Assembly (NCBI GenBank): GCA_013416795.1
Contig: RQSC01000028.1
Coordinates: 845,759 to 877,161, forward strand
Direction of reading: 5' to 3'
Length of the DNA stretch: 31,403 bases
From: Prasinococcaceae sp. CCMP 1430
Taxonomy: Eukaryota; Plantae; Prasinodermophyta
Below are positions 1,814 to 31,307 of this stretch, piece after piece; within the stretch, counting starts at the first letter, position 1; each line of letters starts with the position of its first letter. The notes below the pieces were generated by a model. That model was not told the origin of the DNA, did not search any database, and was given only the letters and a program-made list of their open reading frames with translations. Both the position numbers and the translations under genes were made by a program.

Positions 1814-2662
1814 ATGCTGGAGCGCGACTTGGCCTGCCTGCCCGAGGTCGCGGAGTGGAGTGGCGCCCCGGTGCCCGCCTTCGATGGCAACGGCAATGCC
1901 GGTGCCCATGCCGACGCCGGGGTGGACGCACCCGCCTTTGACCTTGAGGTCGACGTCGACGTCGACGGCTACGCAAATGACGACGCTAAGCGCGCGCGCG
2001 AGCTCGTGGCAGGCGCTGCCGTCGCCACTGCCGTCGCCACAGCCGCTCAGCCGTCACTGAACGGAGGAGGGGGGGCGTCTCCAGCCAACGAAGACTGTGC
2101 GCCCGATCAAACGCTGGAGCGGCAAAGGCGCACGTCATCACGTGTTCCACCGTCCGCTGCGGCCGCGCCACCAGCGCAAAAGGAGGAAGGCACGGGTCCG
2201 CGAGGCGATGATGGCGGCCCGAAGAAGAGAAGGCGCGAGTGCACGCTCGCCGAGGGCATTCGTCGTCTGTTTGGCCCGCGCGGGGAGCCCACCCCAGAGG
2301 CGACGGCTCGCCTCAAGCCGCATCGCGCGTTTGCCAACCTCAGGAACAAACGCGCGCGCGCGCCCGTGCCGAGCGCGCTGAGCGAGGGTTGCAGCGGGCC
2401 CCGCTGGCGCGCGCTGGCCGCCCGCGGTATGGCGGCGCGCATCGACGACGCCGATGTGCCATGCATCGACCCGTGCACCGACGGCGCCGCCGAGGTGGCC
2501 GCCGAGCGAATGGCCATCGCCCTGTGCAAGCAGGAGCACAGGGCGTCGCGCGTCAAGGTGTGCGCGGCGGTCTCTGCGGGCGCCGATGAGCTCAAGCGCG
2601 CCATCCGGCAGCTCCGTGGTGAGGTCGAGCCGCCCGAGCGGCGCCCGCGCGCCGCTGCGTGA
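1814..2662 (+). CDS. hypothetical protein with a basic NLS-like patch (PKKRRR)
   Basis: GCCGCCGCCATG start context just after the N at 1793; open to TGA at 2660-2662. The C-terminal half has normal globular composition. No family recognised. Confidence 0.55.
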   Translation: MLERDLACLPEVAEWSGAPVPAFDGNGNAGAHADAGVDAPAFDLEVDVDVDGYANDDAKRARELVAGAAVATAVATAAQPSLNGGGGASPANEDCAPDQTLERQRRTSSRVPPSAAAAPPAQKEEGTGPRGDDGGPKKRRRECTLAEGIRRLFGPRGEPTPEATARLKPHRAFANLRNKRARAPVPSALSEGCSGPRWRALAARGMAARIDDADVPCIDPCTDGAAEVAAERMAIALCKQEHRASRVKVCAAVSAGADELKRAIRQLRGEVEPPERRPRAAA

Positions 2663-6013: not shown

Positions 6014-6527
6014 GCCGCAACCGGAGCTGCGAGCGCCGGAGCAGACGGCGAGCGCGGCCGGGGACGAGGACGTAAGCTCGCGCGCACGCACGCACACGCG
6101 CACAAACGGGGCGCAGGCGCACGCGCACGCGGGGGCGCGCCAGTGTCCTCTTCCCACACGCCCCGGCTCGGGAGCGGGCGGCTACCGCCCCAACCCCACC
6201 CCACCCTGCCGAGCGCGTGCGCTGTGGCGGCGGCGCGCTCGCGGCCGAGCCGCTGGTACATAAACCCTAATTCCTTTCAACACAAAACCCAAAACCCAAA
6301 AGCGCGGGCGCCGCCGTGCGCTCGGGGAACCGCGCGCGAGCCTGTGCGCGCGCGTGTGCGCGCGCGCGCGCGCGCATGGCGCGTGTGTGTGTGCGTGCGT
6401 GTGTGTTGTCTATGCGCGTGAGTGGTGTGTGTGCGCGCGCGCGTGTGTGTGTGTGTGCATGTGCGTCACAGCGCGCGCGGGGAACCCCCCCCTTCCCTTT
6501 CTCCGGCGGTCCAACCCGGCGGCAGCC

Positions 6528-7350
6528 ATGGGCAAGCGGAAGTCGTCCAAGCCGCCGCCGAAGAAGAAACAGCTCAAGGTGCGTGGCTGCTGCGCCCTCG
6601 TGCGACAGGCGCCCGCTCCTGCGGGCGCGCAAGCGCGCGCAAGCGCATCGCACGCGCGCGATCGCCATCGCTCCATCGCGTCCCGAGCTAACACGCGCAC
6701 ACGCGCGCGCCGGCACGTCCGCGCCCGCCCACGCCCACGCCCACGCCTCACGCGCACACGCCTGCATGCGCGCACACGCGACACGCGCACGCACACGCGC
6801 GCGCGCGTGCACGCGCGCAGGTGGACAAGGTCTTCGACTGCCCCTTTTGCAACAACGCCCAGAGCGTCGAGTGCAAGCTCGACCGCATCAACGACGTCGG
6901 CACCGTCAGCTGCCGCATCGTACGTCGGCTTAGGGGGCGAGGGCGCCGTGCCGCCCGCGCTTGCGCTCGCGCACGAGCTCAGCCGCGAGAGAGAGAGAGC
7001 CCGTTCACCCGCGAGCACGCCCAAGTGCCTGCCTGTGCTGACATTGACACGCACACGCGCAAACGCACGCGCTCACACTCACACGCCGGCCCCTCACACA
7101 CACACACACACACACGAACACACACACACACACACACACACCACCCACCCACCTCACCCACCTCTCTCCGCCCCTTTCCCAGTGTGGTGCGAGCTACTCG
7201 ACGTCCATCAACAACCTCACCGAGGCCATCGACATCTTCTCCGAATGGATTGACGAGAGCGTCGCGGTCAACAAGGGCGACGGCGGTGGGGGGGAGGGTG
7301 GCGCGGCGGAGGCGGTCAAAGCGGGGCGCGCCGGCGCCGACAGCGAGTGA
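6528..7350 (+). CDS. ELF1: transcription elongation factor ELF1/ELOF1 (exons 6528-6578, 6821-6919, 7183-7350)
   Basis: Spliced translation MGKRKSSKPPPKKKQLK|VDKVFDCPFCNNAQSVECKLDRINDVGTVSCRI|CGASYSTSINNLTEAIDIFSEWIDE...*. Shows the CPFC...CxxC zinc ribbon and the WIDE motif; both introns are GT-AG, phase 0. Confidence 0.95.
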
Positions 7351-7759
7351 GCAGGTAATACGCACGCCGATTGTGCGCACGCAGAGAGAGAGAGAGAGAG
7401 GGGGGGAGAAGGGGGGGGGAGGGGGGCAGCGCAGGCGCACCGCTACGCGTGCACGTGCGCGCGTGCGCGCGACCCCGAGTGCGCGCGTCCTTGCGTGCAC
7501 ATGCGTAGGCCTGCACGAGCGTGCAGGTGCGTGCGTGCGTGCGAGTGCGTGTGTGCGCGCGTGTGCGCGCGTACCGCTGGTAGGTGCGAGGGGCGCGGCG
7601 TGAGCGCACGTCGCGGGAGCCCACAGCGCGCCCCTCCGAGCGCAGCCTAGCGCACCACGGCATGCAGGTACGTATACATTACATCCTCGCGCGCCCACAC
7701 CAAGACGCCCGCACGCACGCGCCCGCGCCCACGTGCGCGCGCGCGCGGGCGACACGCGC

Positions 7760-9102
7760 GCGTCGCCCCTGCCGCCGCCGAGGGCGCCGGGCGCCGCCGG
7801 CGCGGCGAGCAGCGCGAGCAGCAGCAGCGCGTGGCACGCGGCGAGCAGCGCCGAGCTCCCCGGGGTGGAGCTCTCGCCCTCCCACGGATTCCAGCAGGCC
7901 TCGATGGCCGCCCAAAGCAGCAGCTTGGCGGCGGCGGGCAGGCGCGTCGCCCACAGCAGCGCAGGCAGGCCGTGCGCGTACCACGCGTAGAACTGGAAGT
8001 GCAGCGAGCGCGCGAGCGCGATGCCCGCGAAGTTGCACTCCAGGAGCACGCGCGCGGTGGCGCCCGCGCGCGCGTGGCCTCCCTCGGGGAACGGCAGCGT
8101 GCGCAGGCGCAGGTTGGCGGACACGATGTGCCGCAGGCGGCCGTGCGGCGCCCACCGCCGCGCCGCGAACACCCCCAGCAGCAGGAGGTGCGCGCCGAGC
8201 AGCCCGGCGGCGAACCCCTTGGACGAAAAGGTCGCCTCCGGCACCCACTTGAAGTTGACGCTCCAGTAGTGGACGAACTGGCGCCCGAAGTTGAAGGCGC
8301 ACGCCACGTACTCCCGCGGGTGCTGCAGCAAGAAGGGCGCGCCGACGCAGAGCTGCAGCGCGGCCGCCAGCGCTAGGCTCTGGGCGACGATGCCGAGCGA
8401 CTGCGACTGCGCGAGCAGCAGCGCGAACGCGGGCGCGTACAGCAGCGCGCTCATCTTCACGGAGACCGCGGCGCTGTGCGCCACGAGCGCCGCGCACGGG
8501 CGCTGGCGCATCATCAGCAGGACGGCCAGCATGCTCAGCGTCGCCACGACGCCGTCGTTGAAGAGGCGCAGGAGGAAGATCGAGTGCAGGCGCTTGGAGA
8601 GCACCAGCAGCGGCAGCGCCCACGGGGGCACCAGCCGCCCCTCGACGTACACGGCGAGCCCCAGCGCGAGGTTGACGAGGTACAGCGCGCCGAACGCGCG
8701 CTGCGCCAGCTGGATGTCCCCTCCCCCCGTGATCGCCTGCAGCGTGCGGAAGACGTACACGTGGCCCGCCGGGTACACCAGCGGCCCCGTGCCGCCATGG
8801 ATCGCGCTGTAGTCGCGCTCGCCGGCCGCGAAGGTGTCCACCTGCTCCATGTACGCGGTCCAGTCGACCTCGGTGTACGGCACGCGCTTGACGATGGCGA
8901 AGCACAGGCAGGCGTCCATGACGAAGCACAGCAGCGCCACGAGGCGCATCGCGCGCGTGTCGTCCGGGTTGTTGAGCCGCGCGAGCGCGGCGCCCACGCG
9001 ATCGGCGAGCCGCCCGCGCTGTCTGAAGCGCTGCTGCTCGAACTGCCGCTGCCAGTCCGCGGAGAGCTGCCGCCGGTGCAGGCGGCGCTCGTTCTCGTCC
9101 AT
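7760..9102 (-). CDS. ALG3: Dol-P-Man:Man5GlcNAc2-PP-Dol alpha-1,3-mannosyltransferase; exact 3' end unresolved
   Basis: Motifs VPYTEVDWTAYMEQV, GGTGPLVYPAGHVYVF, SKRLHSIFLLRLFND, SVKMSALLYAP, FNFGRQFVHYWSVNFKWV and ARSLHFQFYAWY; multi-TM. ATG at 9102. No in-frame stop is seen before the TGTAA at 7679-7683. Confidence 0.93.
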
Positions 9103-9250
9103 CGCCCCGCTCGACGAGATCCGCCTGTGGCGCCGCCCGTCCGCGCGCGCGTGCCCTTGCTGCCCCTCCTCGCCCCCGTGCCGCTCCTGCTGCTCCTGCG
9201 GGGTCGCACCGGCCCCGCCGCCCTCGAGCGGCGCCGCCCGCCTGCCCCGN

Positions 9251-11111: not shown

Positions 11112-11195
11112 GGGTGGAGCTTTTTTTTGGTGGCGTGCTGCGAGATCGAAGGTTTGGGCGGGGAGCTGAGGTTTACAGGGGCCCGCGTGCGCCGC

Positions 11196-11669
11196 TCAGT
11201 CGTCCTCCTTGACGACGCCGATGTCGACCTGCGCCGCGGACGCTCGCGTCAGCGCGGCGCGGACCGCCGCATCGGCGCCCGGACGAGCGCATGTGCGTTG
11301 TGGGTGCGCGTGGGTGCGCGCGGCACACGATCACACAGGAACAGACACGTGCGCGCGCGTGCACACAGACACGTGCGCGCGCGTGCACACAGACACGCAC
11401 ACACGCGCGCAGGCGCGCCCCCCCTCCTCACGCACACACACGCACCAGCTTCTTGTATGTGAGCGAGTTCTTGATGTTGGTCTGGTAGCCGAGCCACTTG
11501 ACGAACCCGGTGCGCTCCGGCGGTGGCTTGGGCAGCTTGGCCGTCGCCGCCTTCCAGCGCTCGGCGTCGCCCTCCCGCAGCGCGCGTAGGGCCTCGGAGC
11601 CGGTGATTACGGCCGCGCTGGCCCCAGCTGCGGGCGCCGCCTCCACCGCGCACTGGACTGCGTCGAACG
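11196..11669 (-). CDS. hypothetical protein, last two exons (11446-11669, 11196-11228); 5' exon not located
   Basis: GTGCGT donor at 11445 and GCTGAC...GCAG acceptor at 11229 join ...KWLGYQTNIKNSLTYKKL to VDIGVVKEDD*; TGTAA at 11173-11177 (minus). Confidence 0.55.
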
Positions 11670-12407
11670 CTGGCGTGGGTGCCGTGGTGATCGAAGTCAG
11701 CGCGCAGCGCGCCTTAGTGTGTGCGCAGATGTGGGCACGTGTGCGAGGGCGCGTGCGCGTGTGCGTGCATGTTTGTGCGTGCGCCGGGGCAGCAGCTTGC
11801 GCTGAGGGTCCGATCGGGCGACGAGAGCAGGCGACCGTGGGATGCTGGGGTCGGGTGGGGTGGGGTGGGGTGGGGGTGTCGCCGCCGGCGCCGCCTGGGC
11901 CGCTGCCGCTGCTGCGAGCGCGCGCGAATTTCCCCATCAAAATGAGAGCAGTCTAACCGAACCGCAAAGATTCCGTTTCGCTGTACAGTCCTGTAGTTAA
12001 GGTTACACATTAGGGTAACAATTCGGATAGAGGGTTCTTTCATGATCACATCGCACTCGCGCGCGCGGCGCCCCCGCAGGTCGAATCGCATGCGTCGCCG
12101 CACGGCGCTCCGGCCCGCGCTCCTCGATGGCGCTCGCGCTGACGTGGCGGGCGCGCGCGCGCTGCTNNNNNNNNNNNNNNNNNNNNNNNNNNNNNNNNNN
12201 NNNNNNNNNNNNNNNNNNNNNNNNNNNNNNNNNNNNNNNNNNNNNNNNNNNNNNNNNNNNNNNNNNNNNNNNNNNNNNNNNNNNNNNNNNNNNNNNNNNN
12301 NNNNNNNNNNNNNNNNNNNNNNNNNNNNNNNNNNNNNNNNNNNNNNNNNNNNNNNNNNNNNNNNNNNNNNNNNNNNNNNNNNNNNNNNGCGGGCGCGCGC
12401 GAGCGCG

Positions 12408-12539
12408 ATGGCGTCCGGCGGGGCGCCGCACATCGAGCTGCTCGGCGTCGCGTCGCTCGCCGAGCAGCTCGACCGCAAGCTGCTCGTGCAGACGCGAGAC
12501 GGTCGGACCGTCGTGGGGAGGCTGCGGTCGTTCGACCAG
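12408..12539 (+). CDS. LSM1: Sm-like protein LSM1, first exon only (rest lost at the gap 12660-12759)
   Basis: MASGGAPHIELLGVASLAEQLDRKLLVQTRDGRTVVGRLRSFDQ matches the Sm1 motif of LSM1 (SL.E.LD+KLLV..RDGR...G.LRSFDQ); followed by a GT donor at 12540. Confidence 0.85.
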
Positions 12540-13115
12540 GTGGGCCCGCGCGAGCTCCTCGCCGGCGCGCGCGCGCGCGCGCGCACACCGACACACCTCG
12601 CGTGGCTTTGCGCCCCGAGCGCCTCCGCGCGTGTGCGCGCTCGGCGCTCGGCGGGCGCGNNNNNNNNNNNNNNNNNNNNNNNNNNNNNNNNNNNNNNNNN
12701 NNNNNNNNNNNNNNNNNNNNNNNNNNNNNNNNNNNNNNNNNNNNNNNNNNNNNNNNNNNGCGCGGCTGCCGCCACCCCGTGCCTCGCCGCCACCGCCGCC
12801 GCCGCCATCTCCTGCGAGGGAGGACGGGAAAGGGGCCGCGCGCGCGCCCGCCGCCACGCCGCGCGCGTGTGGCGCTACCACGGGCACCGCTGCACCCCCC
12901 GCGCGCTCATGCTCGAGGTATCGGTTACGTATTTAGGGTGATGTCCCGCCTCACACAATTCAAAAACATATGAACATGCTCAGCCCTCGGCCGAAAATAT
13001 TGCCTTTTGATTAGGATTCAAAGACGGTAGGGTCTTTGAATGTTGCGGAAGGCGTACAACCACGAGGGCGCGCCACACAGCGCGCGCGGCGGTGGCGCGG
13101 CCAAGGTGGGCTAAG

Positions 13116-15142: not shown

Positions 15143-15650
15143 TTACGACACGAACTGCAGCGAGATGCCGATGAGCGTGGCGAAGGTCACCACGAACGCG
15201 ATGCCCACAACCTTGTCCGAGTCGCCCTGCGGCTCCATGTCAGCGACGTTCTCGCCACGCTCGGCGAACTGCTTCACGCCGCGCTCGCCACCGCACCAGC
15301 CACCGGCCGCGGCGCCCTCGTCCTTGCCGGGGTACAGCGACGCGCCACCCTTGTACAGCTTCTGGTCCGGGCCCCAGTAGCCCTGCAGACGCACGCGCGC
15401 AAGTTGGACGTCGTCAGCGCGTGCAACGCGGTGTTGTCATGCGGCGCAGGGCGAGATCGAGCGAGCGCGCGTCGCCTCGCGCAGGTGCGTAGCAAGCTGC
15501 GACCTGTGTGGCGCACGCGCGAGCGCGCCGGCGCCTTCACTGTGTGCGCACCAGCACGGCGCAGGCGCCGGGCGAGCGGCGGAAAAGGCGCAAGCGTGGT
15601 GGCTCGCGCACTCGCGCGGGCGGCCCGCGCGCTCCGCGCGGCGCTCTCCC
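15143..15650 (-). CDS. small single-pass membrane protein with a probable plastid transit peptide (exons ~15520-15650 and 15143-15382); start lost in the gap
   Basis: Arg/Ala-rich exon ...RRLRRAGAHTVKAPARSR, GTGCGC donor, CTGCAG acceptor, then GYWGPDQKLYKGGASLYP...AGGWCGGERGVKQF...VVGIAFVVTFATLIGISLQFVS* (one C-terminal TM). Confidence 0.6.
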
Positions 15651-16939
15651 CCGACTNNNNNNNNNNNNNNNNNNNNNNNNNNNNNNNNNNNNNNNNNNNN
15701 NNNNNNNNNNNNNNNNNNNNNNNNNNNNNNNNNNNNNNNNNNNNNNNNNNNNNNNNNNNNNNNNNNNNNNNNNNNNNNNNNNNNNNNNNNNNNNNNNNNN
15801 NNNNNNNNNNNNNNNNNNNNNNNNNNNNNNNNNNNNNNNNNNNNNNNNNNNNNNNNNNNNNNNNNNNNNNNNNNNNNNNNNNNNNNNNNNNNNNNNNNNN
15901 NNNNNNNNNNNNNNNNNNNNNNNNNNNNNNNNNNNNNNNNNNNNNNNNNNNNNNNNNNNNNNNNNNNNNNNNNNNNNNNNNNNNNNNNNNNNNNNNNNNN
16001 NNNNNNNNNNNNNNNNNNNNNNNNNNNNNNNNNNNNNNNNNNNNNNNNNNNNNNNNNNNNNNNNNNNNNNNNNNNNNNNNGCCCCGTTGGCGCGGCGCGC
16101 CGCCGGCGCCAAACGCGAAATCTGCGCGGCCCGGCGCGATCCGGGCCACACGCGCGCGGGGGGGCGCGCGCGGCGGAAAGAGGGTCTGAGAAAATACGAA
16201 TCAAAATGTAATTATATATATGTGGAAAAGGAAGAGAGGTTGGGGTGGGAGAGAATACCGTAAAGGCGGTGCGGTGCGGTGCGCGCCGCGCGCGAGCGCG
16301 CGAGCGCGGGCCGGAGCGGAAGTGCGCCGGGCACGAGGCCGGAACTCGGAAGAAGAAGCCGCCGTCGGCCGGCCGGTGCGGAGGACGGGTAGGCCACAGA
16401 CAGACGGACAGCGGCAGCAAGTGAGGCGCGTGCGTCGCGCGACACACGCCTCCGCCTCGTGGCTCGTGCCGCGCGTGGGCGTGCTCCCGTCCTCTACAAC
16501 AACCTTGGTATAGCCAAAATGCCCAACCCCGGGTACAGTAACCATCTGAAGGTACGATCGAAGGCTCGAAGCTCTTCTCGTTTCAAGTTGATTGGAAACT
16601 TGACGTGGGGGAGAGTTAGGGTAGACCCTGGTGTCGCGGGCGGCGGGCGGCCCGGCCCGACCGGGCGGCTCTCGCCGCAGGAGGCGGGCGTCGGAGGCGC
16701 GAGGAGGAGGGCGGCCGCGCTCGGCGAGGCGGGAAGCTCGGGCGGCGCCGCAATCGGACGGTGGGAAGCACGGGACGGCGAGCCTCGGGAAGAGCGTGCG
16801 AGCGCAGCGTCCTGCGCGCTCGCTGCGCAGCCGCGGCAGTACAGTCGAACTTACAAAAGCGCTGGCGTCGCCGCGCCGGCGCGCCTCCGCAGCGCCATCC
16901 CCTCCCTTGCCTCCCGTGCGAAGATGCGCTCACGGGTTG

Positions 16940-23212: not shown

Positions 23213-23553
23213 CGCCCGCGGCGGCCAGGCGGCACGCAGTGGGCCGCGCCATCGGCGTTTTTTTTTTTTTTTTTTAACGCTCGTCGGCCTGCGCGCGCCG
23301 GATTGGGAGCGCGGGCGGGACTGCCGGGGCCGGGCGAAGGGGTGGGGGTGGGGGCGGGGAGGTGGGGGTGAGCGGGCGTCGGAGGCGCGCCGGGCCGCGC
23401 GCGAGCGCATGCGCGCGTGTGCGGGTGCGCGAGCCTTTCTCGCTCCCCCTAGTTCCGTACGCCCACCCACCGACCTCGGAGGGCTCCACAGCGCGCGCGC
23501 GCTGCGCCAGCGGCGCGCGCCGCCCCGCATCCCGCGCCACTCGCCCACACGCG

Positions 23554-28506: not shown

Positions 28507-30690
28507 TCACACGCGGCTGCGGCGACCCCACGCCCCAGCAGCGACCCCGCGCGCCAGCAGCGAAGGCGCGTTCCCGAGCGACCCGCGGTTGCCGCGCGCG
28601 AGCGCGTAAGAGACGACGACGCGAGCGGCCTGCGTGCTCGCTCGCGAGCGCACATTTATTATACTGCGTGAGTGCTGGCCGGCGTGTGGCTGGCCTGTGG
28701 CCGGGCGAGCGCTGCTCAGCGCTTCGACTTCCGTCGGCCGCGGCCGCCGCCGCGGCCGCGGCCGCCGCCCGCCCCGACTGCCGCCCGCCCCGCGCCTGCC
28801 GCCCGCCGCGCGCCGCGCCTCGTCGCGCGCCGCCAGCTCAGCGAGCTCCATGTCCTCATCGCGCTCCGCCTCGGCGAAGGCGTCGAGCGTCTCGCGCTGC
28901 CGCGCCCCTCGGGACACTCGCCGGTGCTTCTTGCTGTCGAGGCGCACCTCTGCGGCCAGCACGCCGCCCGCGCGGCTCTTGTACTTGAGCGCCGCGTCCG
29001 CGCGCGCGGTGCGCGCGCGCTTGCGCTCGACGGCTTCGAGCTCCTCGCGTATGGACACGTAGAGCGGGTAGCGCTCCCACCCGTGGGACGCGTCCGAGGC
29101 CTGCGCGTCGCCCTCGTCAGCCACGCCCCCCTCGTGCCCCGTGAGTTCGCGCACGGTGTCCGCGTCGAAGAGCGCGCCTCCCGCCTCCCCCTCGCCGGCG
29201 CCCGAAGGGCGCACGACGCACCCGGGCTCGTGCACGTGCGTGCAGTTGCTGAACGCGCAGGGCCCGCGCTCGGCGTGGCATCGCGCGATCTCGGGGAAGA
29301 GCGCGCCGAGCTCGTCCGGCGACACGCTGCCGAGCCCCGGCTGGATGAAGCCCGGCGTGTCGGCCAGCAGCCCGCCGCCCGGCAGGTGGATGAGGCTGAC
29401 GTTGCGCGTGGTGTGGCGCCCCTTGCCGCTGCGCTCGCTCACGCCGCCGGTGGCCTGCAGGCCCGCCCGGCTGGCCGCGGCGAAGCTCACGTTGCCGGCG
29501 TCGTCGGCCACCTCGAGCACCGACAGCGAGGGCACGTATTTGTATTTGTTCTCCCTCGCCGAGAGCTGCGGCGCGTCAAGGGAGGACGGCGGCGGCGGCG
29601 GCTGGCGGCTGGCGCTGCTGCCGCCGGCGGCGGCGGCGCGGTCGTCTTCGTCGGCGTCTTCGTCTTCGTCGGCGTCGGCGGATCCCCCTCGCGCGGAGTC
29701 CTGCGCCTGCATGTGCCTCAGCCAGAGCGTGTTGATCATGGTGCTCTTGCCCACCCCCGAGGGGCCCGCCACGACTGTCGTGCGGCCCGTGAGGCGCTCC
29801 GCCAGCGCGTCGAGGCCCTCCCCCCCGCCCTCGCCCGCCGCCATCGAACAGGTGGTCGCGGAGTAGCCCCAGGCGGCGATGCGCTCCTGCGCGGCGCGCG
29901 CCTCGTCCTCGCCGCAGAGGTCGGCCTTGGAGAGCGCGAGCGACACGTCGAGGCCGGTGGCCTCGGCGGCGACGAGGAAGCGGCTGACCTGCGCGAAGTC
30001 GAGCTCGGGCCGGACCAGCGCGAAGACGAGCAGCATGTGGTCGGCGTTGGCGACCGGCGGATCGGAGCTCTCGGTCGTGCGCGGCGCGACGGCGGCGACC
30101 ACGCCCCGCATGTGCGCCCAGTCGATGGAGCTCACCTCCACGCGGTCGCCCACGAGCACCGACTGGCCCATCTTCTTCAGCAGCGAGCGCTTGGTGCACA
30201 GCAGCTCGGGGGCGTCCGACGACACGCGCGAGGCCAAGGGCAGCAGCGAGGCGGCGTCGGAGGCGGCAAGGCCCGGCCGTTCCGAGGCGGCGGCGCCCGC
30301 GCTGACTGCGTCCGAGTCGAGCCGCACGTGCACGAAGTTCGCTCGGCCGGCGACGACGACGCCCTGCGTGGTGCCGGGTGTGGTTTGCGAGAGCGAGCGA
30401 GCGAGCGCGCGCGAGCGAGCGAGCGAGAGAGCGAGAGAGCATCACGTCGGGTGGGCATGGGGGAGGGATCTGTCAGACGCGAGACTGAGCGCTGCGAGCG
30501 GTGGTGTGGGTGGGGCAGGGTCGGGGACGCATGCCGCGGCGCGAGAGCGCACCCGCCCGCGCCAGCGCGCCGCACGCACCGTGCGCGTCGCGTCGGCGCC
30601 GGCCTGCGCGACCGCATCGATCGCCTCAGCCGCCTCAGCCGCCTCACCCGCATCACCCGCGAGCGCGAACGCCCCGCCGCCTGCGCGCCG
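28507..30690 (-). CDS. rsgA: RsgA/EngC circularly permuted ribosome-assembly GTPase, organellar type (intron 30364-30579); both termini uncertain
   Basis: GVVVAGRANFVHVRL and LVGDRVEV (OB fold), PPVANADH, LSKADL (G4), GPSGVGKST (G1), GRHTTR (G2), DTPG (G3), Zn site CAFSNCTHVHEPGC; G4-G1-G2-G3 order. Confidence 0.92.
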
Positions 30691-30977: not shown

Positions 30978-31151
30978 NGCGCGCTGTGGCGCCGCCGCGG
31001 CGCGCGGGCGCGAGTGCGCGCGCACGGCGACAAATATTTAGGTATTTCGATAGGGTTCGTGTCATGCGCCGCACGCTTTCTGACGTATTGCAAGGGCACC
31101 GTTATGAACCCAACAGTCTCGCTAACCCAAACCTCGTTTGTTTCCTTGCAA

Positions 31152-31290
31152 GGGCGCGTGGCGCAGTGGATTAGCGCATCAGACTTCGGAGGCAGGAAGG
31201 GCCCATCTCTCTTCCGCCAAAGCTATCTGAGGGTAAACGGCTGCACTGCAACGCCTTTCCTCATCGCGGGTTCGAACCCCGCCGTGCTCG
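31152..31290 (+). tRNA. trnR-UCG: tRNA-Arg(UCG) with two introns: 31190-31224 (35 nt, position 37/38) and 31235-31264 (30 nt, variable loop 47/48)
   Basis: Removing both inserts gives a full cloverleaf: acceptor GGGCGCG/CGTGCTC+G73, D arm GCGC/GCGC with the GG loop, anticodon stem TCAGA/TCTGA with loop CT-TCG-GA, variable loop GGGTC, T arm GCGGG-TTCGAAC-CCCGC. A poly-T run follows 7 nt downstream. Confidence 0.93.
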
Positions 31291-31296
31291 TAGAAC

Positions 31297-31307
31297 TTTT
31301 TTTTTTT
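31297..31307 (+). terminator. RNA polymerase III poly-T terminator of the tRNA-Arg gene
   Basis: T11 run immediately after the discriminator base. Confidence 0.85.

Follow-up and report, generated by a model that had tools for sequence, protein, structure and literature searches.

A candidate twice-spliced nuclear tRNA-Arg(UCG) gene of Prasinoderma coloniale with a predicted intron in the variable loop

Introduction

Does a tRNA-Arg(UCG) sequence that is interrupted twice in the nuclear DNA of a green alga, once at the usual position in the anticodon loop and once in the variable loop, represent a working gene whose transcript would have to be spliced twice, or is it the remnant of one? Atypical tRNA introns were described as almost nil in green algae in a 2014 review (PMC3978253), and in the same year Yoshihisa cautioned that when one out of many synonymous tRNA genes of a eukaryote contains inserts, that gene is usually a pseudogene (PMC4090602). 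The sequence in question lies within a 31.4-kb stretch of DNA, the whole of which was analyzed and is referred to here as the window. An original prediction for this locus proposed a eukaryotic nuclear tRNA-Arg(UCG) with two inserts, a canonical one at 37/38 and another in the variable loop at 47/48, and argued that the two must be removed in a fixed order. Here we consider the origin of the window, the anatomy of the gene, the structure of each intron and the folding of the precursor, and we then weigh the ways in which the locus could be read.

Results

Origin of the window

The ALG3 open reading frame in the window is identical (466/466) to Prasinoderma coloniale PRCOL_00006487 in EukProt EP00793 and falls in the same 90% cluster, while the next best named relatives are land plants and green algae at 42 to 50% identity. 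The GC content of the window (69.7%) also agrees with that of the published P. coloniale genome (69.8%; PMC7455551). Because of the complete ALG3 identity and the matching GC content, sequence comparison identifies the window as nuclear DNA of Prasinoderma coloniale, a member of the phylum Prasinodermophyta, which branched off before the split between chlorophytes and streptophytes.

The assembly is scaffolded and unfinished, and the window holds 818 N, most of them in a block at about 15.6 to 16.2 kb (15274-16447), with a single N at 30978. Two other features of the window were recorded. A GC-poor island (11714-12808 and about 12000-12600; GC 0.46 versus 0.70) contains a 364-aa ORF on the minus strand that begins with ATG and has no Pfam match, and which may have a foreign or mobile origin or may just be an unusual gene. 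GT/GC-rich simple repeats at 6434-6479, 6761-6820, and 11352-11410 give sub-threshold Rfam matches to the snoRNA ZL1 (20-28 bits, where the gathering score is 64) and are low-complexity artefacts.

A tRNA-Arg(UCG) gene in three exons

The Rfam tRNA family RF00005 matches the plus strand end to end at 31152-31290 (41.5 bits, E 1.1e-5, model positions 1-71/71, gathering score 29), and this is the sole Rfam family above threshold in the window. The alignment accommodates two large insertions, one of 38 nt in the anticodon loop and one of about 31 nt in the variable region, which separates the anticodon stem from the T stem. Excision of the two introns delimited in Table 1 leaves a 74-nt product for which ARAGORN returns tRNA-Arg(tcg) with a cloverleaf. 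Every stem pair in this product is standard (21/21: acceptor 7, including two G.U, D 4, anticodon 5, and T 5), and the conserved positions are in place, namely U8, A14 and the U8:A14 pair, G15:C48, G18 G19, U33, G53, T54 T55 C56, and A58. The UCG anticodon is flanked by U33 and by a purine at 37 (G37), and in the restored variable loop, GGGUC, C48 pairs with G15 and G46 lies above C13-G22. Sliding either junction by one base leaves the product unchanged (37/38 or 38/39 for intron 1, 46/47 or 47/48 for intron 2), and the choice of 37/38 and 47/48 is therefore made by the geometry of the bulge-helix-bulge (BHB) motifs alone. The Rfam alignment, the ARAGORN call on the spliced product and the motifs at the junctions thus bear out the gene and the two inserts that had been proposed.

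Table 1. Features of the tRNA-Arg(UCG) locus, in coordinates of the window
Feature	Coordinates	Strand	Description	Basis
GC-poor 5' flank	31020-31151	+	132 nt; GC 0.50 versus 0.74 further upstream and 0.70 in the window	
Exon 1	31152-31189	+	tRNA positions 1-37: acceptor 5' strand, D arm, anticodon stem 5' strand, C32 U33 U34-C35-G36 G37	Rfam alignment and ARAGORN cloverleaf
A box	31159-31169	+	TGGCGCAGTGG; uninterrupted	
Intron 1	31190-31224	+	35 nt; canonical 37/38; BHB-like motif	Motif scoring, shuffles, local dG
Exon 2	31225-31234	+	10 nt; positions 38-47: A38, anticodon stem 3' strand UCUGA, G44 G45 G46 U47	ARAGORN and direct reading
Intron 2	31235-31264	+	30 nt; variable loop 47/48; HBh' motif	Motif scoring, shuffles, local dG
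Exon 3	31265-31290	+	Positions 48-73: C48, T arm, acceptor 3' strand, discriminator G73	Rfam and ARAGORN
B box	31269-31279	+	GGTTCGAACCC; uninterrupted; sole B-box pattern match in the window	
T11 run	31297-31307	+	6 nt downstream of the discriminator base; probable RNA polymerase III terminator	

In its default mode, ARAGORN overlooks this gene and calls a 98-nt tRNA-Ala(GGC) at 2382-2479 (+) instead. That call falls inside a GC-rich coding ORF (35-2662) where no Rfam tRNA appears even at E<=1, and is probably one of the false positives to which DNA of 70% GC is prone. When introns were allowed, the program forced a tRNA-Pro(CGG) with one 52-nt intron across the locus, a reading that we ruled out given that its anticodon is shifted and it conflicts with the Rfam alignment. 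No further tRNA genes were found in the window by Rfam, by the B-box pattern or by inspection upstream of the other two T runs.

Signals and flanking sequence

With A and B boxes that are both intact and a T run downstream, the gene appears to carry the signals of a nuclear gene transcribed by RNA polymerase III (Pol III). The T11 run is one of three runs of at least eight T (or A) in 31.4 kb of 70% GC DNA; the other two, T18 at 23258-23275 and T8 at 11121-11128, have no tRNA-like sequence upstream. Within the GC-poor 5' flank, 31033-31048 is an AT-rich patch, AAATATTTAGGTATTT, and the three bases immediately before +1 are CAA. To judge from the tRNA genes of plants and algae (PMC3978253), this flank could possibly serve as an upstream promoter or initiation region. 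The nearest gene encodes an RsgA-type GTPase (28507-30363, minus strand) and diverges from the tRNA gene.

Structure of the two introns

The motif was scored, at junctions fixed by the tRNA alignment, as a 4-bp helix with a 3-nt bulge adjoining the 3' end of each strand, the cut falling after the second bulge base (definition per PMC4090602). In intron 1, the outer helix is the 5-bp anticodon stem, and the 3' bulge, CU/A38 (C31223 and U31224 before the cut, A38 after it), sits above that stem. The central helix has three of four pairs (C32-G(-3), U33-A, and U34-A) and a C35.A mismatch, and the inner stem has 3+5 bp (GGC-A-GGAAG/CTTCC-GCC). The anticodon-intron pair joins C32 (31184) to G31222 at intron position -3. 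Intron 1 accordingly shows what is expected of a canonical eukaryotic intron, with its position at 37/38, the pair between nucleotide 32 and intron position -3, and a 3-nt bulge that holds the 3' splice site. As a motif it belongs to the relaxed class and falls short of strict hBHBh', with h (5 bp) and h' (3+5 bp) both there and the central helix imperfect.

Intron 2 is built differently. Its central helix pairs G42 A43 G44 G45 (31229-31232) with CCUC (31259-31262) and is Watson-Crick at all four positions, and the bulges (5' G46 U47/A and 3' AU/C48) are in register with the junction set by the tRNA alignment. The inner stem, AACGGC/GCCUUU, forms five of six pairs, and the outer helix is essentially absent, consisting of scattered G.U pairs only. 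For want of a usable outer helix, intron 2 is of the relaxed HBh' type and not strict hBHBh'.

These structures agree closely with the original prediction. The pairing check recovered intron 1 at 37/38 together with both the internal stem and the C32:G(-3) pair that had been described for it. For intron 2, the GAGG:CCTC helix and its GT/A and AT/C bulges proved to be as claimed, with predicted cuts that restore GGGUC exactly, and the exon-side flanking helix that had been called weak contains nothing beyond G.U pairs. The stem said to close intron 2 is present as well, although one of its six positions is a C.U mismatch.

The chance of finding such motifs was assessed by holding the exons fixed, shuffling each intron 200,000 times and counting the trials in which the motif at the fixed junction was at least as good. 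This occurred in 0.047% of trials for intron 2 and in 0.20% for intron 1, and the geometry of the motifs is in this sense non-random. Looser BHB-like matches are common, with 17 within the 139 nt of the gene; the support therefore comes from the coincidence of the motifs with independently defined junctions and not from the existence of a motif alone. No second copy of either intron is present in the window.

Folding of the precursor and order of intron removal

The two motifs overlap only at G42 and A43, which the intron-2 helix uses and which in the anticodon stem pair with C28 and U27. Free minimum free energy (MFE) folding of the precursor reproduced neither the cloverleaf nor the bulges, and explicit structures were evaluated in its place. 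A structure that sets the intron-1 motif on a 3-bp anticodon stem and retains the full intron-2 motif within a cloverleaf has an energy of -40.7 kcal/mol, and one that keeps the 5-bp anticodon stem with 2 bp of the intron-2 central helix has -40.2 kcal/mol. Taken locally, the intron-1 motif has -12.2 kcal/mol with the anticodon stem and -7.8 without it, and the intron-2 motif has -7.0. It had been claimed that the two introns need mutually exclusive folds and must leave in an obligatory order. The sharing of G42/A43 on which that claim was built is real, but the folds are near-isoenergetic and so are not exclusive, and a 2-nt overlap between near-isoenergetic alternatives does not support an obligatory order.

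An order may exist nonetheless. In Cyanidioschyzon merolae, ectopic introns are removed before the 37/38 intron even though each motif can fold independently, and the authors of that study could not tell whether the order of removal follows a rule of free energy or one of position (PMC3728597). Order in P. coloniale may therefore be present without being forced by structure. If C. merolae is a guide, the ectopic intron 2 would leave first, although the local free energies do not favor this; in tRNA-Arg(UCG) the free-energy rule and the position rule predict opposite orders. The variable-loop insert would project at the site of the class II long arm, and presumably could do so without upsetting the L-shape on which ruler-type recognition of 37/38 depends.

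Comparison with related sequences

When JGI metagenome contigs were searched for the sequence pattern of the gene's D arm and anticodon loop, four loci were returned, all from unrelated GC-poor eukaryotes. One of them (L003) is a tRNA-Arg(UCG) without any interruption, with an Rfam score of 68.4 bits, and the other three (L002, L004, and L005) are copies of one tRNA-Arg(UCG) gene with a 13-nt intron at 37/38. The P. coloniale product aligns to L003 and L002 without gaps over 74 columns, with 59/74 and 56/74 positions identical; five and seven stem pairs, respectively, have changed on both sides, and every pair is standard. The variable loop reads AGGTC in both comparators and GGGTC in the P. 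coloniale product, giving RGGTC in 3/3. Because the alignment is gapless, the proposed cuts yield a product whose length and register are exactly as expected. The comparators inform the mature sequence in this way and say nothing on intron 2.

The 13-nt intron of the GC-poor eukaryote (L002:1900-2010 (-), L004:6655-6745 (+), and L005:700-785 (-)) ends in GAAGCT, and intron 1 of P. coloniale ends in AAAGCT. A T5 run lies downstream of the three copies, as do tandem repeats of roughly 60 nt, and Rfam at the gathering threshold lists none of the copies.

An orthologue with the intron-2 insert was not found among the four JGI loci, the contigs recovered by RsgA synteny or near-identical marine contigs. 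The synteny search led to Tara Oceans contigs (L006-L011, in ENA and Logan) whose RsgA is 60% identical but lies in a different neighborhood with no tRNA. These contigs are gene-dense, have about 68% GC and place BCCIP, ESF2, PhyH/SAP, and homoserine dehydrogenase next to RsgA; their source is a GC-rich picoeukaryote related at a distance. The near-identical contigs are L001 (ENA ERZ17098505), with 99.0% DNA identity to window positions 7757-9221, and L012 (ENA ERZ907794, Tara Oceans PRJEB4352), with 97.8% identity to 29967-30649, both of which end before the tRNA. Such near-identity means that marine metagenomes contain a close relative of P. coloniale. Beyond 7757, L001 no longer follows the window, a pattern that would be expected of a spliced transcript or of a structural difference.

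Discussion

A functional, twice-spliced gene as the probable reading

Taken together, these results make it probable that the locus is a functional nuclear tRNA-Arg(UCG) gene of P. coloniale whose transcript is spliced twice. RNA polymerase III would transcribe it from the intact A and B boxes, possibly aided by the GC-poor upstream flank, and would stop at T11. The tRNA splicing endonuclease (TSEN) and tRNA ligase would then take the two introns out of a precursor body of about 139 nt. The 35-nt intron 1 would be recognized at 37/38 by its usual anticodon-intron pair and the 3' bulge atop the anticodon stem, and the 30-nt intron 2 by a local, relaxed bulge-helix-bulge (a 4-bp helix, two 3-nt bulges, and an inner stem) read independently of its position. 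After cleavage at the predicted bonds and ligation, the outcome would be a 74-nt body with the variable loop GGGUC, to which CCA would be added and which could then be used in translation. We favor this reading because of the full-model Rfam match despite two inserts, the sound cloverleaf, the comparators, the motif geometry, the T11 run, the GC-poor flank, and the precedents from C. merolae, Chondrus crispus and TSEN. Set against it are the missing outer helix of intron 2, a central helix that borrows G42/A43, and an MFE fold that lacks the cloverleaf.

Alternative readings

The strongest competitor is a pseudogene, in which the 30-nt insertion would stay in the variable loop and decoding would fall to an intact UCG paralogue or to tRNA-Arg(ICG). 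An inosine-bearing tRNA-Arg(ICG) could in principle decode CGA, and a tRNA-Arg(UCG) gene therefore need not be essential. The intron-2 motif that has no outer helix fits such a loss of function, as does the general warning that eukaryotic tRNA genes with non-canonical inserts are for the most part pseudogenes (PMC4090602). The exons, however, are undecayed, with all stem pairs standard and all invariant positions present, and the terminator is intact. The insertion itself carries, in the exact register of the junction, a helix with 4/4 Watson-Crick pairs that is flanked by two 3-nt bulges and accompanied by an inner stem, a combination matched by 0.047% of shuffles. On this evidence we regard a pseudogene as unlikely.

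Considerably less likely still is a product of about 104 nt from which only intron 1 is spliced, the 30-nt insert being kept as an oversized variable arm of a class-II-like tRNA-Arg. The insert does sit at the class II long-arm site and folds into a hairpin, and readings with a single intron are what ARAGORN forces when introns are allowed; those readings, however, turn the anticodon into CGG/Pro and are not cloverleaf-consistent with Rfam. The base of the hairpin consists of BHB bulges in splice register, not of a continuous stem. In addition, tRNA-Arg is class I, and both comparison tRNA-Arg(UCG) genes have 5-nt loops. To our knowledge, the 35-nt variable region that would result is longer than any known class II arm. 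An insert that is absent from the DNA of the organism, introduced by assembly or sequencing error, is barely credible: the sequence is unfinished, with 818 N in the window and isolated N calls such as that at 30978, but the insert is unique in the window, a structured, register-exact motif would not arise by assembly error, and nearby coding sequence is 100% identical to the published P. coloniale protein set.

Implications of a probable twice-spliced gene

If the gene is functional and spliced twice, as we think probable, the best reading is that the layout of a canonical plus an ectopic intron, known from C. merolae and Chondrus crispus, now extends to the green lineage, where it is undescribed in the searchable literature. 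Searches of full texts that paired Prasinoderma or Prasinodermophyta with tRNA introns or BHB returned nothing relevant. The P. coloniale genome paper did not analyze nuclear tRNAs (PMC7455551), and a 2026 survey of tRNA repertoires in photosynthetic organisms gives the same picture and leaves Prasinoderma unmentioned (PMC13578239). We lean slightly toward the broader view that the nuclear tRNA set of P. coloniale is as disrupted by position-independent BHB introns as that of C. merolae, in which case the capacity would be ancestral to Archaeplastida or have been gained repeatedly. Arg(UCG) would then be one instance among others, with a rare variable-loop site and a motif that competes with the anticodon stem. 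Standard eukaryote-mode tRNA annotation would, if this is true, under-count the tRNA genes of the P. coloniale genome.

The original prediction also implied a TSEN of broad specificity, whose genes lie outside the window, and further disrupted tRNAs in the genome, of which the window contains no other example. Eukaryal TSEN has been reported to cut BHB as well as BHL substrates (PMC13728533), and the plant TSEN is probably (alpha-beta)2, like the archaeal enzymes of broad specificity (PMC10485636, PMC13728533). Whether a plant-lineage endonuclease acts on BHB outside 37/38 is the question that both of these recent papers name (PMC10485636, PMC13728533). A culturable green alga with tRNA genes that require such cutting would make that question directly testable.

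Comparison with known systems

Non-canonical tRNA genes occur broadly where the original prediction had placed them (PMC3728597, PMC3978253), and the closest parallel is with C. merolae, in which 27/43 nuclear tRNA genes contain 42 introns of 11-69 nt, with one to three per gene (PMC3728597). These interrupt the D stem, D loop, variable arm (one case), T stem, and T loop; their motifs include hBHBh', hBH, HBh' and helix-less forms, the genes have a T-stretch terminator, and the spliced forms were demonstrated by RT-PCR (PMC3728597). The P. coloniale gene shares with them the combination of canonical and ectopic introns, a relaxed BHB of a type (HBh') that occurs there, the variable-arm site, and the T-stretch terminator. 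C. merolae is a red alga in which splicing has been shown, whereas P. coloniale belongs to the Prasinodermophyta, among the green plants, and its splicing is predicted. The C. merolae motifs also fold independently, while the intron-2 helix of P. coloniale overlaps the anticodon stem by 2 nt. Another comparison is offered by Chondrus crispus, whose nuclear tRNA genes have validated introns at 20/21 in the D-loop and 58/59 in the T-loop (PlantRNA 2.0). Some of those genes likewise have a second intron beside the canonical one with a predicted BHB-like structure, experimentally validated in that species, but the ectopic sites there are fixed at 20/21 and 58/59 and differ from the 47/48 variable-loop site of the green alga.

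Among archaea, the motif consists of a 4-bp helix between two 3-nt bulges, with relaxed hBH and HBh' forms, multiple introns and position-independent recognition (PMC4090602). The non-canonical introns of Crenarchaeota and Thermoproteales, which are cut by (alpha-beta)2 or epsilon2 EndA, share this motif definition with P. coloniale, whose gene differs in being eukaryotic and nuclear with Pol III signals, so that the enzyme would be a eukaryal TSEN. Short ectopic tRNA introns are also known from the Guillardia nucleomorph (PMC4090602). Within the green lineage, the picoalgae Ostreococcus and Micromonas have circularly permuted tRNA genes with junctions at 37/38 (Maruyama et al. 2010, reviewed in PMC3978253). 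They resemble P. coloniale in having tRNA genes that require BHB-type processing, but their genes are permuted, whereas that of P. coloniale is colinear and carries an ectopic intron.
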